A stretch of DNA of 63,322 bases, counting the filler, from Olpidium bornovanus S191 (taxonomy: Eukaryota > Fungi > Olpidiomycota), in assembly GCA_017911155.1 (NCBI GenBank). It is 27 parts of 27 records of this genome, joined end to end, with 100 filler letters (N's around TTAATTAATTAA, not from the genome) between each part and the next. Parts side by side here need not be neighbours in the genome. Positions count along the whole stretch, not along the records: positions 56,648 to 62,139 come from JAEFCI010011990.1; 26 more parts are not named here. One strand, 5' to 3'. Of the stretch, positions 56,548 through 62,671 are shown in pieces. The notes under the pieces are model-generated. The model was not told the origin of the DNA, did not search any database, and saw only the letters and a list, made by a program, of their open reading frames with translations. The position numbers and the translations under genes were made by a program. Positions within the stretch are counted from its first letter, which is position 1. The number at the start of each line of letters is the position of its first letter.

Positions 56548-56850
56548 NNNNNNNNNNNNNNNNNNNNNNNNNNNNNNNNNNNNNNNNNNNNTTAATTAAT
56601 TAANNNNNNNNNNNNNNNNNNNNNNNNNNNNNNNNNNNNNNNNNNNNCCACCCCGCCCCAGTCCCCAGACCCCAGTACCCACACACACACGCACACACGC
56701 ACACCGGCCGTGGCCTCAAAAAGGTGAATTGCGCGCGGCCCCCTGACAGGATTTTCTTGCGCGCAAAAAAACAAAAAGACGGCGAGGGATGGGGAGGAAT
56801 GGGGGCCGCGGATTTGGCAAAATCCAAAACAAAAAAAAACATCCATTTAC

Positions 56851-58484
56851 CACGGTTATCCACAATAGCGCGATGGCGAGCGCCAAAGAGGGCGCAAAGG
56901 TGACAGGCAGCACGTTTTTCGAGGCGCATTTCGCGGTCCACGTCTGGTCCGCGACGGACAGCGGGAGTAGTGTAGTAGGCGCATGGGTGGGCCACTCGCC
57001 GTCTTCCCTTCCAATCAGGACGGTCCCGTCCGGCGCCACGATCTGCATTGCCGCTCCAGCTTCCCGCAAGTACGGTTCCATGTAGCCGATAATTCTTTTC
57101 AACGGAACAATTCCTTTAAAAAAATCCCCCAAAGAAAAGACGCAATGTGAAAAATCCTGTCGCAGGCGCGCGCGCGGCGCGGCCCTTCCCTCTAACCTTC
57201 TACGATGCCATCGGCGAGGCGAGAGTCGCTTGCGGCGGAGGAGGAGGAAGAGGCGGAGGCGGAGGAGGAAGGGGCTTCGCCGTCGCTGTCGCCGCCGTAA
57301 TAGCGGACGATCGCGCTAACGTTTGAAAAGTAAACCGGCATCACGATCGACAATGCGGTCTTCTCCTTGGCGAACGAGGTCGCCACCGGCCTGATGACAG
57401 CGGCCGTCGTGACGCTTTTCAGGACGGCTTTGCGGACAGTGCCGTTTCGGGTTTCGTGGTTCCACGTGTCGCCGTCTGCTTTTTATTTATTATTATTATT
57501 TTGTTTTTTGGTGGTTTTGGTTTTTTTGGTTTTTTTTTTGTTAAAAAAAATCGCGAAACAAGGGGGAAAGGAAGGAGACGCGGATCTTGTCACTCAAAAC
57601 AAAAAAAGGGGGCGAGGCCAGGGAGAAAGAAGTTGGAAGGCCCCGAACTGAGCCGCGGGTGCGCGATCGCGCAAAATCGTACACGCAAAAATAAAGTGTT
57701 GGGTCGCGGGGAGGGGTGCGGCGGGGTCCCACGTACTCAAGACGGCTTTGTTCACCGCGGGGTAGGCGTACTGGATCGGATAGTAGAACAATCCGGGCCC
57801 CGCGCTTGTCTGGTTCGCTGGGCTCTGGTGGATGGCGCCGAACTGCTGTTCGTAGGCGGACCTGTCCCGCGCGTTCACCCTCGGGGCGAAAAGGACGTGG
57901 ACGAAGTCGTGGCGGCGGTCGTCGGCGGCCCTGGCCCAATTTTCAAACGCGGAGGCCGTCGGGCCGGTCCCCACCCCGCCGCCGCCGTCTATGAACAGGA
58001 CCGTCGACGACCACAGGTTGTCGAGGACTTCCTGTATCTTGCACTGGAACTGGAACTGGAGTTGGCCGCACACCCGCTCGATCCTGGCCTCGTCGGCCTG
58101 CACCTCGACGTGCAGGACCGCGAAGAAGACGGCCGCGGCGACGGCGATCCCCACGGCCGCGAGGGCCGCGGCGATCTTCGACAGCCTGCTGCCGTCCTTG
58201 CTGTTGTTGCAGTTACTGCCGCTGTTGCTGTTGCGCTGCTGCTCGTGCTGCCCCGTCGCCGGCTCCGCCGCCGCCGAGGGCCGGCCCCACCGGCGGCGGC
58301 GGCAGCACCAGAAACGGCAGCAACGGCGCCGATTGTGCTTCGAGCGCGCCGCCAACGGCTGTGCCGACGACGACGAGCCGACGCCGCCGCCGACGACGCT
58401 CGGGAGCAGCAGCGCTGTCTTCGCCGTCGTCCCGATCAGCAAGCCTGCGCAGTCGGCGGCGGTTGCGAGGGCCCACCCCTCCAT
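56851..58484 (-). CDS. TM-CHASE-TM sensor protein (N-terminal part of a CHASE histidine kinase or cyclase), three exons, 3'-partial
   Basis: TM1 IAAALAAVGIAVAAAVFFAVL; CHASE-like FENWA..., APRVNARDRSAYEQQ, YYPIQYAYP...N.AVL|NGD.....R...VRKAV......RPV......ALSIVMPVY; ...VADQTWTAKC; TM2 LALAIALLWITV. Exons 57737-58484, ~57197-57476 and 56851-57113 have canonical GT-AG junctions. Confidence 0.75.
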
Positions 58485-59055
58485 TGAGACGGAGGCGGCG
58501 GCGGGCGAATGAAATGGGGCGGCTGCGGCGGCGGCGAGCGAGCCTTCCGGGAGAGAGAGAAATAAAAGAGAGAGAGAGAGAGAAAGAGAAGTGCGCGCAA
58601 CATGCGGTAGCCCACAGCGGGGATGTAAGGTGTGGATACGTGTTCATTTGCCAGTTCGTGCCGGGGGGTGGAAAGAGAGGAGAGATAATTGAGAATAATT
58701 TTCTTTTTCATCACGCCCCTCTCGCGCGTTGTGTGTGCTGTGATAAATGTGCGAATTAGCAAGTGCGGTGTGCGTGTACACCAACCTGTAGAATAAAGGG
58801 GGGGCGCTCAGCCGTAGACGCACTGTGCACACCAGCCCGCGTTACCCCTGCGTAGATTCCTTAGTCGCCGCCATTAAAATAGGGTCAAGGGAAACTAGTA
58901 AACAAACGCCCCGAATACATTTCTTCCCTTCCCGTTTCTTACGGACTCGTGGCGTTCTCTGCGTCTGCGCATCTTTTGGCTTGAGGTTATGAGCCCAAGG
59001 GGACTGCCCTGACCACGAACGCAGAGCTTACCGCCAAAGAAGAAAAGCAGAAGAG

Positions 59056-59135
59056 CCCTTGCCGTCCGTCGGCAACTGCGCGAAAACCCTTTGCCGTCTG
59101 TCGGCAACTGCGCGAAAAGCCCTCACCTTCCGCCA
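59056..59135 (+). repeat. 31-32-bp direct repeats, each with a TTGCCG-N5-CGGCAA hairpin
   Basis: CCCTTGCCGTCCGTCGGCAACTGCGCGAAAA x2 plus a partial third copy. Confidence 0.85.
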
Positions 59136-59601
59136 TCTGTTGGTGTCCACGATAGGCAAGGCACCGTGAGTGCAAATCGCGATTTCTTCCTGGTCCGCAG
59201 AACCGGGAGAAGAGAAGAGAAGGAACGACCGACGCGGCCGCAGCAACCGTGGTTTGGCCGAATTGCTATGGCCGGTGAACTTGGGGGCACGCCATAGGAA
59301 GGTAAAGCCTTCTTCACCCCCGAACGTGAAAGGGGAATGTTCCGTGATGCCACCAAACCCGGTGCGCTAAGCCCCTCAAGAGAGTCCATATTGTCCAACG
59401 CATCCCGAATGACGGGACTGTCGGAGAAGTTGAGAAGAATAGTTGACTCCGTTCTGCTATGATGAGAACAAGCAAAGGAAGATAAGTAGCAGCGGGAGCG
59501 TGAAAACGCTGACGCGGCAATGGCCGCCTTACGTGACAGGGTGGCCTCCCTCCAAAGGGAAAAGATCCTGTAATTATATCTGACAGAACTTTAGCTTTTG
59601 C

Positions 59602-59793
59602 TTAGTCGCTTTCATCGAGTACTATAAGTGTGCTAAATTTCAAAATCTTCCCACATTGATCCGTTTTGCTGGTGGCAAGTGATCAGGTTTGGGGTCATTA
59701 GTCGCTTTCATCGAGTACTATAAGTGTGCTAAATTTCAAAATCTTCCCACATTGATCCGTTTTGCTGGTGGCAAGTGATCAGGTTTGGGGTCA
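59602..59793. repeat. Perfect 96-bp tandem duplication, nested in a divergent ~195-bp duplication extending to ~60058
   Basis: TTAGTCGCTTTC...GGGGTCA occurs at 59602 and 59698, with a diverged copy from ~59900. Confidence 0.93.
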
Positions 59794-60060
59794 AGTGAAT
59801 ACTATTAGTACTATTTTCGTGTTTTTCTTTTTCGGGTGCTGCGTTCTCATCATCCTGTGATCGGATCTGGCAGTGCTTTGGCTCATTGGAAAGCCCGCGT
59901 TGAGTACTATAATTGTGCCAAGTTTTAAAATTTTACGTTTTGGTCTTGCTTGCTGGTGGCAAGCGATCAGGTTTGAGTAGTAGTGAATACTATTGGTACT
60001 GCACTCACGTTTTGTTAGGGAATGCGTTCTCAGCATCCTGTGATCAGATCTGGCAGCGTG

Positions 60061-60440
60061 GGGCCGGCGGCCACGCCCGGTGTGCCCGGCGTGCCCGGCG
60101 GCGGCGCCCGGTGTGCCCGGCGGCGGCGCCCTGTGTGCCCGGCGGCGGCGCCCTGTGTGCCCGGCGGCGGCGCCCGGTGTGCCCGGCCCCACCGGGCGCG
60201 ACCATGCCACAAAGTTGCTCGCCTTCAGTTCTCCGGCCCCCCCCCCCAACAAATCCAAAAAAACAAACACCTCGGAAACCCCGAAAACCCCGAAAACCCC
60301 GCCCCGGCCGGCTGCACCCCGGTGCCCGCCCGCTGCGGCCCGGTGACCACCCGTCGCCCGTCGCGCCCGGTGACCGCCCGTCGCGGCCCGGTGACCGCCC
60401 GTCGCGGCCCGGTGACCGCCCGTCGCGCCGCCTTCGGCCG
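60061..60440 (+). repeat. GC-rich 21-22-bp minisatellite arrays (CCCGGTGTGCCCGGCGGCGGCG)n and (CCCGGTGACCGCCCGTCGCGG)n
   Basis: Two arrays (60061-60200 and 60335-60430) flank a spacer containing (CCCCGAAAA)n. Confidence 0.9.
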
Positions 60441-60532
60441 CCCCGCCGCGCCCTGGTGCCCGCCCGTCGCGCCCCCTCCGGCCGCCCAGCTCCCGCCGAA
60501 GCGCCATCCGAGCTGTGGACTTTACCACAGGT

Positions 60533-61360
60533 TCAATTCAGGGAAGTGGACTAAAACTACAGGGGCAAGGGCGTGTCAGAACGGTGAGCAACGGCTTGAG
60601 GGACTGGCTGCAAAAAACAGAACCAGGATAGCTTTCATGGATGCCTGCTAATCAGGTTTTTCACCGCTTAGTACATGTACAGTCTCAATTCAGGACTTGA
60701 ATTGAACCCCCCCAGTGAAGTGGACCAAAGCTGCAGGGGCAAGGGCGTGCCAGAACGGTGAGCAACGGCATGAGGGACTGGCTGCAAAAAGCAGAACCAG
60801 GATAGCCCGTTCAAGTGCTACGGAGGCACAACTCGTCGTGGTGCTTTCCAGCTGCACGTCCAACTGCACTGGGAGAGCCAATTGCTTCGGCACGACCAGT
60901 GTTCGCACCTGGGCCAACAGTCTCTCAGCGAGAGTCGAGACAGCCTGTTTCCTCTACCTGTCACTGTGAAAGCATGTCACTGTGAAAGCATGTTAACGTG
61001 AGAACGTGTGAATGTGAGAACGTGAAAGCGTGTGAATGTGAGAACAAGTCACTGTGAAAGCATGTCACTGTGAAAGCATGTTAACGTGAGAACGTGTGAA
61101 TGCGAGAAAATGTCACTGTGAAAGCATGTTAACGTGAAAAACCAGGATAGCTTTCATGGATGCCTGCTAACCGGGTTTTCCACCGCTTAGTACTTGTTCA
61201 GGCTCAATTGAGGACTTGAATTGAACCACCCAGCGAAGTGGACCAAAGGTGCAGGGGCAAGAGCGTGTTAGAAAGGTGAGCAACCGTTTGAGGGACTGGC
61301 CATAAAACCCAGAGCCAGGATAGCTTTCATGAAAGCCGAGCTAACCAGGTTTTCTACCGT
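60533..61360. repeat. Diverged ~150-175-bp satellite, three units (starting ~60533, 60685, 61204); the second unit is interrupted
   Basis: Shared blocks TCAATT(C/G)AGG, AAGTGGAC, CAGGGGCAAG, GGTGAGCAAC, GAGGGACTGGC and CCAGGATAGCTTTCATG. Confidence 0.92.
60807..61139 (+). mobile_element. 333-bp insertion with 16-bp-repeat tail, flanked by a 12-bp target-site-like duplication AACCAGGATAGC
   Basis: The 12-mer lies at 60795-60806 and 61140-61151, whereas uninterrupted satellite unit 1 has it once. Confidence 0.65.
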
Positions 61361-62671
61361 TGGCGGCAGCCTTGGTGACCATGGCGGCATGGTGACCATG
61401 GCGAACTGACAATTCTTTCTTCTCTCCTTTCTTCTCTCTTTCCTCTCTCCTTCCTTCTTCTGTGCACGCGCAGCTTTTCAGGTTTTTACTGTTCTGGTTT
61501 TATGTTCCGGGTTTCCGGCTTCGGGTTCCCGGTTTCGAGTTTCGCGTTTTGGGGTTCAGGGTGCGTGTTTCGGTCGCTTGTTTGGTGACGTGCAAATTTG
61601 TTTTTTGCACGTGGAATCTTCTTTTTTTTTGCGGCGTGCGAATCTTCTTTTTTCTTGCGACGTGCGCTCTTACCGTTATGCTGAAATTATGTATTTCCCA
61701 GATTTTCCGCATAACGGTGCGAGGAAACCCCTTCAAAATTAATGAATCTCCCAAATTTTCGGCATAACGGTACGAGCCTTTTTTGCTATGTGCGAATTTT
61801 CCTTTTTTGCGACGTGCGAAATTAATGTAAATTCCTAAATTTTCAGCATAACCTGGAGGGATGATCCAAGCGCCAGGGTGCCAAGTCCCACCTAGGATCA
61901 GCCAAGGAAGAGGTCTTACGAGCAAAGGGACTTCGTGAGTGGCAGCCATTAAACATACTTTTTTGGGTTTTAGTTTATGCGACACTGATATTTCTGATGT
62001 AACCAGGATGCAGCACTGCATTACGGGTGGGCAGTGCCTGCCGGGGGAAACACCCTGTTGGGGGAACGTGCAGTCCCACAACAGTACATGGAAATCAAGA
62101 AGTATGTCCGGGAAGTGTTGTTTATTGTTTCGCGGCGGGNNNNNNNNNNNNNNNNNNNNNNNNNNNNNNNNNNNNNNNNNNNNTTAATTAATTAANNNNN
62201 NNNNNNNNNNNNNNNNNNNNNNNNNNNNNNNNNNNNNNNCATGACTAAATTGGGGAGGAGGGGGACTGTGCGGACCCGCGGCAGGGCCGCCGTACTGATA
62301 CGCGAAGGCAACTCCCCTCCGCCCTGCCGGCGCCACCCATCCCCTCCGTTCGGAGGTCCGCCCGCGCTCCCGCGGGTCCCTTCCTCCACAGCGTGTGCCC
62401 AAGGCGCGCCCGGCCGCAGGTCACGTCTATGTTGAACAACCCTGGATTCTTCTCTACAACTCTCGTAAAACCCTTTCAGACTCCAGATCTAGAGCCAGCC
62501 AAAATCCAGAGCTAGAACCCGTGAATACAAATCTCCAGATTGCGCTGAGCGCAGATTGAATGCTTCACTTGTTACAGGCCCCTCTCCGAAGAAAACCGAT
62601 TCCCAGCGCTCGCGTCTGTTTTGATCGTCTTTTCAGCGAGGACAGGGGGGTTTTTTTGACCTTGACGCGGC

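Follow-up and report, generated by a model that had tools for sequence, protein, structure and literature searches.

CHASE receptors are known in bacteria, plants and Dictyostelia, and it is through receptors of this kind that plants perceive cytokinin. In the solved CHASE domain of the Arabidopsis receptor AHK4, a long stalk helix is followed by two PAS-like subdomains. It has also been proposed that early fungi and other microbial eukaryotes sense plants by means of CHASE receptors. Such receptors were reported in 2017 in Chytridiomycota, Blastocladiomycota, Glomeromycotina and others (PMC5285503), and in 2018 in brown algae and diatoms (PMC6324907). Bacterial CHASE sensors are exemplified by PcrK of Xanthomonas campestris (Protein Data Bank (PDB) entry 6K62; PMC7804937), fungal ones by the group XIX hybrid kinases (Herivaux 2017, Kabbara 2018), in which CHASE likewise lies between two transmembrane (TM) helices of a microbial eukaryotic protein; Dictyostelium has a CHASE ectodomain both on ACG, a CHASE-adenylyl cyclase, and on DhkA, a CHASE histidine kinase.

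The window analysed here is a stretch of 63,322 nucleotides (nt) from Olpidium bornovanus S191 (assembly GCA_017911155.1), and the piece under study spans its positions 56648-62139. This piece holds a single recognisable gene, on the minus strand, whose visible part is very probably an expressed gene carrying a TM-CHASE-TM sensor module. The TM-CHASE-TM layout is common to this protein and to bacterial CHASE sensors; unlike these, it has two low-complexity loop insertions and is encoded by a spliced eukaryotic gene. What is new is the receptor itself, divergent and apparently unannotated; CHASE receptors as such were already known.

The gene is transcribed and spliced

The three visible exons (Table 1) sum to 1290 nt, or 430 codons, as read from the sequence and translated in their frames, and an open frame is kept through all three. 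Their splice donors are GTACGT, GTTAGA and GTAAAT, both acceptors end in AG, and the codons formed at the two junctions are AAC (Asn) and GGA (Gly). G+C at third codon positions (GC3) is 0.91, 0.78 and 0.71 in exons 1, 2 and 3 respectively, against a total G+C of 0.47-0.56 in the introns and flanks.

Public runs were aligned to positions 56648-59000. Both internal junctions are carried by a 2341-nt contig of run X1 and by a 635-nt contig of run X5, two runs from separate studies. The two contigs match the three exons with 0 differences, and neither contains intron 1 or 2; the 83-nt joint appears among those of both runs, and the joint between exons 1 and 2 was deduced from the record coordinates. 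Since a spliced form arises only from RNA, the contigs bear out both the transcription of the gene and its predicted splicing: the gene is real, and it is eukaryotic. The three-exon model at 56851-58484, which had been proposed in a sequence-only reading of this DNA, thus proved exact in both coordinates and splicing, and the motifs quoted in that reading were all found where it had placed them, on the minus strand.

At its upstream end the X1 contig reaches 58622, which lies 138 nt before the ATG. At the other end it leaves the genomic sequence at 56849-56851, its next 909-911 nt mapping outside the piece; as the departure is at the third donor, it is within intron 3 that the piece ends, and the half of the gene meant for signalling lies beyond it. 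The first letters past this donor, present as a 30-letter loose end of X1, read in frame as VVCGTRITWIA, prolonging the second TM helix (TM2). X5 also contains a 248-nt contig of low depth (56820-57067) that continues from exon 3 straight into intron 3 without a splice, at a depth of 4 against 30 for the spliced X1 contig. This contig is most simply pre-mRNA; the alternative is a retained-intron form, which would end 45 codons past TM2, where reading through intron 3 meets a stop.

The extracellular part is probably a divergent CHASE domain

Exon 1 encodes a basic Cys-rich tail, the first TM helix (TM1), the stalk helix and the beginning of CHASE, up to YYPIQYAYPAVNKAVL. The motif FAPRVNARDRSAYE is present in exon 1 and RNGTVRKAVLKSVTTAAVIRPVATSFAKEKTALSIVMPVY in exon 2. 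In every test of the CHASE assignment, single exon pieces were scored separately. Pfam CHASE (PF03924) was the sole credible family for exon 1, at 22.4 bits for the whole exon and 24.3 bits for its ectodomain (E 3e-5; profile positions 6-75 of 189, or 37% of the model). In a feature search of the ESM Atlas with TM1 and the exon 1 ectodomain, CHASE clusters made up 20 of the 30 nearest, at a score of 0.97 and with 197 of 256 features shared.

To these we added comparison with a dedicated CHASE profile. Bacterial and archaeal genomes were scanned for back-translated YYPIxYxEP, and 310-residue regions were taken around 120 matches; 97 regions were long enough, 77 of these belonged to one BLAST family, and the 57 that were non-redundant were aligned to give the profile, A1. 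All 57 members pass Pfam CHASE (best E 1e-74), and the profile recovers the solved CHASE domains of PcrK (E 6e-37) and AHK4 (3T4J, E 3e-24). By hhalign, the exon 1 ectodomain aligns with A1 at a probability of 96.4% and an E of 1.1e-9. The alignment takes in 115 columns, beginning with the stalk helix and ending at YYPIQYAYPA; its score is inflated at 7 residues by the retrieval of A1 with the query's own YYPIxYxEP. The aligned stretch includes the W/F-x-P-R-V..R..fE block; this block, FAPRV..R..YE in our protein, and the stalk helix are independent of the way A1 was selected. By hmmsearch, exon 1 scores 29.2 bits, and 0 of 500 shuffles score as high.

Exons 2 and 3 had no role in the selection of A1. 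The best match of exon 2, EKTALSIVMPVY, falls on the PVY block (A1 positions 169-188), 1 residue off the diagonal predicted with its second residue, Asp, on the CHASE-wide Asp, and an equal score on that diagonal was reached by 14 of 3000 shuffles (p ~0.005). That of exon 3, PLSVADQTWTAKCAS, falls on the GRxW block (positions 263-283); hhalign gave an E of 7.6e-4 over positions 248-289, and with hmmsearch the exon 3 score was reached by 3 of 3000 shuffles, none of the 3000 in that region of the profile (p below 0.001). When the exons were added as fragments with MAFFT, exon 2 began one column past the end of exon 1, and the PVY and GRxW blocks are collinear and follow the YYPI block in order. 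Three exon pieces thus fall on successive parts of the profile, in order and in register, as expected of a split CHASE domain. The extracellular part is, in all likelihood, a very divergent CHASE domain, an assignment that the sequence comparisons support well.

What it shares with bacterial CHASE domains are, in the same order, the stalk helix, x-P-R-V..R..fE, YYPIxYxxP, an Asn, the CHASE-wide Asp, PVY and a GRxW-like block. It differs from them in that exon 1 has only ~21% identity to the profile, and in that the Glu of YYPIxYxEP is replaced by Tyr. Alignment with hmmalign confirmed that the Gly-rich and Ser-rich loops, earlier described as lineage-specific, are insertions relative to the CHASE profile. 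Part of the coding sequence for the Ser/Ala-rich loop is a 21-nt tandem repeat (57232-57275; GCGGAGGAGGAGGAGGAAGAG on the plus strand), which looks like a microsatellite expansion within a surface loop.

Several observations weigh against this assignment, besides the inflation already mentioned. The figures given above are scores of exon pieces, not of a whole domain. Exon 1 alone falls 0.7 bits below the Pfam gathering score of 25 bits, and exons 2 and 3 alone are blank in Pfam, in PDB sequences and in the ESM Atlas, where exon 2 was uninformative. For the ectodomain part of exon 1, AlphaFold2 run on the single sequence reached a mean predicted local distance difference test score (pLDDT) of 40, at which the fold is not informative. 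With phmmer, exon 1 found no relative at E 0.001 among 1.84 billion representative proteins, so that conservation adds nothing to the case. Finally, two deeply sequenced RNA runs from 2026 gave 0 reads on the gene at 6% sampling, a depth that makes no test. In the Pfam search put forward with the sequence-only reading, CHASE is the only credible family and exon 1 matches it at the E value given above, with a score short of the gathering level; exons 2 and 3 added no match.

Membrane topology and a predicted route of signalling

Kyte-Doolittle hydropathy, calculated exon by exon over 19-mers, has two peaks, both above 2.1, which bracket the domain. The ~285 residues from TM1 to TM2 fit the CHASE criterion of a domain of ~200-300 residues between two TM helices. 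Together with the exon-wise matches to the CHASE profiles, these peaks support the TM1-CHASE-TM2 module that had been read from the sequence. The ~100 residues ahead of TM1 are strongly basic and Cys-rich (RRRCCRFWCCRRRRW), which by the positive-inside rule would place the N-terminus in the cytosol and the ~285-residue stretch from TM1 to TM2 on the outside. No Pfam family matched this N-terminal tail. Its polybasic Cys cluster (58283-58327, minus strand; exon 1 residues ~53-67, ~40 residues before TM1) is possibly an acylation or membrane-association motif.

On the preferred reading, the piece covers the 5' portion of a gene for a two-pass membrane receptor, with no less than 59% of its coding sequence. 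A tail of ~100 residues, basic, Cys-rich and probably cytosolic, leads into TM1; the sensor of ~285 residues, probably extracellular, comes next, and TM2 follows. Solved CHASE receptors suggest by analogy that the protein would act as a dimer, with a small ligand bound in its membrane-distal PAS-like pocket. The stalk helix and TM2 would then relay the effect of binding to an output domain in the cytosol, presumably encoded in exons past the edge of the piece. As in AHK4, both the stalk helix and the final strand ahead of TM2 contain Cys. A disulfide joins these two elements of AHK4 (PMC3491891), and a bond of this kind may form here.

The output domain

The X1 contig leaves room after TM2 for at most ~303 residues (911 letters past 56849), of which ~10 have been read. 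A linker followed by a class III nucleotide cyclase, the arrangement of Dictyostelium ACG, would fit into this space, and so would the core of a non-hybrid histidine kinase. For the HisKA, HATPase_c and receiver domains of the plant and fungal hybrid kinases there is too little space, unless the contig is truncated, and a hybrid kinase output like that of AHK4 would not fit the transcript length observed. Among possible outputs, we place a histidine kinase first, at somewhat less than an even chance, then a cyclase, as a tentative second choice, and last some other output or none, for which the prospects are rather poor.

The alternative that survives best is an ACG-like receptor cyclase, in which the CHASE ectodomain and TM2 would be followed by one class III adenylyl or guanylyl cyclase domain. 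Allowing for a 3' untranslated region, the ~303-residue room would accommodate a linker and a cyclase domain of ~190 residues, and the CHASE-TM-cyclase architecture does exist, in the dictyostelid ACG (PMC4399386). It is this architecture that gave CHASE its name. The cytosolic part of ACG is of a size that fits the room left in this transcript. Yet the room suits a non-hybrid kinase core equally, the X1 contig may be truncated, not one letter of a cyclase is in the sequence read, and among the Amoebozoa examined ACG is reportedly not conserved outside Dictyostelia (PMC4399386). We consider a receptor cyclase of this type unlikely, although it is the strongest of the competitors.

Somewhat less likely again is a broader proposal, that the gene belongs to an orphan eukaryotic CHASE lineage with a cytosolic part of at most ~300 residues, with a cyclase or another output that is not a hybrid kinase, ACG-like outside Dictyostelia, and with a ligand other than cytokinin. 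Should the output be a cyclase, or the host lineage be one with no known CHASE proteins, the range of CHASE signalling would be wider; should the gene encode another hybrid kinase in a chytrid or blastoclad, it would be ordinary.

The ligand pocket and the case for cytokinin

A second alternative is a cytokinin receptor homologue of the type found in plants and early-diverging fungi, a CHASE hybrid histidine kinase sensing plant adenine-type cytokinins. The TM-CHASE-TM module is typical of AHK2-4 and of fungal group XIX (PMC5285503, PMC6324907), and the A1 profile, which AHK4 and our protein share, ties the family to AHK4; the protein has no direct sequence match to 3T4J. In AHK4, Asp262 hydrogen-bonds the adenine ring. 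The AHK4 residues named in PMC3491891 are Tyr250, Asp262, Thr278, Leu284 and Thr286. When 3T4J is aligned with A1, the residue types at all five agree if chain numbers are taken as 125 lower than those of the protein, making Asp262 chain residue 137 and A1 position 147. Position 147 is Arg in the bacterial consensus, which stands for most bacterial CHASE domains, and in PcrK.

In our protein, exon 2 Arg9 comes to lie at position 147 by MAFFT fragment placement, with modest confidence, as HMMER leaves the stretch unaligned. The placement follows from an ungapped count from the exon 2 Asp, a count that also sets exon 2 Ala16 on the conserved Ala154. The protein thus apparently resembles bacterial CHASE and PcrK in having Arg in the Asp262 column, and differs there from AHK4; the pocket looks bacterial-type, not AHK4-type, which is indicative, not firm. 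The plant adenine derivative suggested as ligand in the sequence-only reading is not supported here: checked against an AHK4-like pocket, the Asp262 column appears to hold Arg, on a placement of low confidence.

The Asp at residue 2 of exon 2 was considered as the counterpart of Asp262 and ruled out, since the 3T4J profile alignment puts Asp262 seven residues downstream. It corresponds to D130 of the AHK4 chain and to profile position 140, where no fewer than 90% of the bacterial sequences have Asp. The alignments mark it as a residue of the CHASE family at large, not a marker of cytokinin. As the nearly invariant CHASE Asp differs from Asp262, a "conserved Asp" in a CHASE domain is no evidence of cytokinin binding.

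The apparent lack of an Asp262 counterpart need not be decisive. PcrK senses cytokinin by a recognition mechanism unlike that of AHK4, according to Chen 2019 as cited in PMC7804937, so the lack of this Asp would leave cytokinin in play. Fragment placement also puts Ala or Val, both small, at the column of Thr278, which in AHK4 is the wol site. To be set against this are the residues remaining past TM2, ~303 at most and too few for HisKA, HATPase_c and a receiver, and the lack of any annotated fungal or plant CHASE kinase matching exon 1 at E 0.001. Moreover, the CHASE domain of DhkA senses a peptide, SDF-2 (PMC6324907), so a CHASE domain by itself does not support cytokinin as the ligand. A cytokinin receptor of the plant or early-fungal type is, in our judgement, improbable.

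A truncated product or another fold

Slightly more improbable still is a CHASE membrane protein that ends in a short tail and lacks an enzyme domain, whether truncated or made as a sensor only; it could arise as an isoform that retains intron 3 or from a decaying copy. Such a product would account for the unspliced X5 contig at 56820-57067, with its stop after 45 codons, and would suit a gene that adjoins 3.5 kb of repeats on a short contig and whose translation an overlapping upstream open reading frame (ORF) may hold low. But the deeper X1 contig (30 vs 4) is spliced at the third donor and runs 909 nt further, all three exons combine an open frame with high GC3, and the unspliced contig has its simplest explanation in pre-mRNA. 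Least probable of all is some other extracellular double-PAS domain (PDC- or Cache-like), or an unrelated one, with CHASE-like motifs by chance: a Pfam score under the gathering threshold, the blank PDB sequence search, the lack of homologues in protein searches and of a confident fold prediction for the exon 1 ectodomain would allow it, but three separately scored exons match successive parts of the CHASE profile in the right order and spacing, Pfam has no Cache or other sensor family for these exon pieces, and the ESM Atlas neighbours are CHASE clusters.

Homologue searches and distribution

The preferred reading, of an expressed gene with a TM-CHASE-TM module, concerns a protein that sequence searches otherwise fail to place. 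Beyond the phmmer result, a word-indexed search of 5.8 billion proteins with region 95-249 of the 296-residue ORF gave no match, and the same outcome was obtained with a scan of metagenome contigs with the exon 1 protein, a search of metagenome contigs for exact DNA matches to the first 30 letters of exon 4, exact-product look-ups of three genomic ORFs, and tblastn against plasmids. PDB sequence searches with each exon returned only artefacts, namely summed repeats of designed "Cake" proteins. With exon 1 blank in these searches, the gene lies outside the annotated protein collections and is without a close paralogue or orthologue there.

The group XIX CHASE domain has been called highly degenerate (PMC5285503), and a highly degenerate CHASE is a point of likeness with our protein; a point of difference is that no group XIX protein among the 1.84 billion representatives matched exon 1 at E 0.001. 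A gene that is split by introns, scores below the Pfam threshold and has no database homologue escapes routine detection, and surveys of annotated proteomes may under-count CHASE receptors of this sort.

Features of the piece

The coordinates of the gene and of the other features of the piece are collected in Table 1.

Table 1. Features along the piece at 56648-62139, in window coordinates.
Feature	Positions	Strand	Evidence
5' untranslated region, to the limit of the X1 contig	58485..58622	-	X1 contig on 57737-58622, 0 differences
Exon 1, coding part, 249 codons + 1 nt, ATG at 58484	57737..58484	-	translation, contigs, Pfam, hhalign
Intron 1, 261 nt, GTACGT..AG, 47% G+C, T and A runs	57476..57736	-	missing from X1 and X5 contigs
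Exon 2: CHASE-wide Asp, RPV..IVMPVY strand block, Ser/Ala-rich loop	57197..57475	-	translation; PVY profile match
Intron 2, 83 nt, GTTAGA..AG	57114..57196	-	83-nt skip in X1 and X5
Exon 3: membrane-proximal CHASE part (block SVADQTWTAKC) and TM2	56851..57113	-	hhalign, hmmsearch
Intron 3, first 203 nt, donor GTAAAT at 56850	56648..56850	-	X1 contig departs here
TM1, exon 1 residues 104-124, IAAALAAVGIAVAAAVFFAVL	58113..58175	-	hydropathy peak 2.65
GGGGV insertion, loop after stalk helix	57972..57986	-	hmmalign, insertion vs 57-member CHASE profile
YYPIQYAYP, most conserved CHASE motif	57759..57785	-	aligns to YYPIxYxEP of CHASE profile
Ser/Ala-rich expanded loop after PVY strand, 40 residues vs 17 in profile (~23 extra)	57210..57329	-	unaligned in hmmalign
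TM2, last 21 residues of exon 3, VLPVTFAPSLALAIALLWITV, then VVCGT in next exon	56851..56913	-	hydropathy peak 2.15
Upstream ORF, 56 codons, ATG at 58606, part of ORF 58436..58762	58436..58606	-	within transcript contig
Perfect 96-nt duplication	59602-59793		
GC-rich arrays, 22-nt and 21-nt periods	60084-60187, 60355-60475		
16-nt array	60959-61129		
Unit of ~107-200 nt, three copies	60539, 60713, 61231		

The upstream ORF at 58436-58606 extends across the main start codon (58484) in a different frame; it could limit translation of the receptor, in what would be a regulatory role. Pfam recognised no family in the other ORFs of the piece, including those of the 3.5 kb upstream of the gene (58623-62139), and an Rfam scan of the whole piece returned one sub-threshold miRNA match only. 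These upstream 3.5 kb are dense in repeats, which probably explain why the assembly contig is short.

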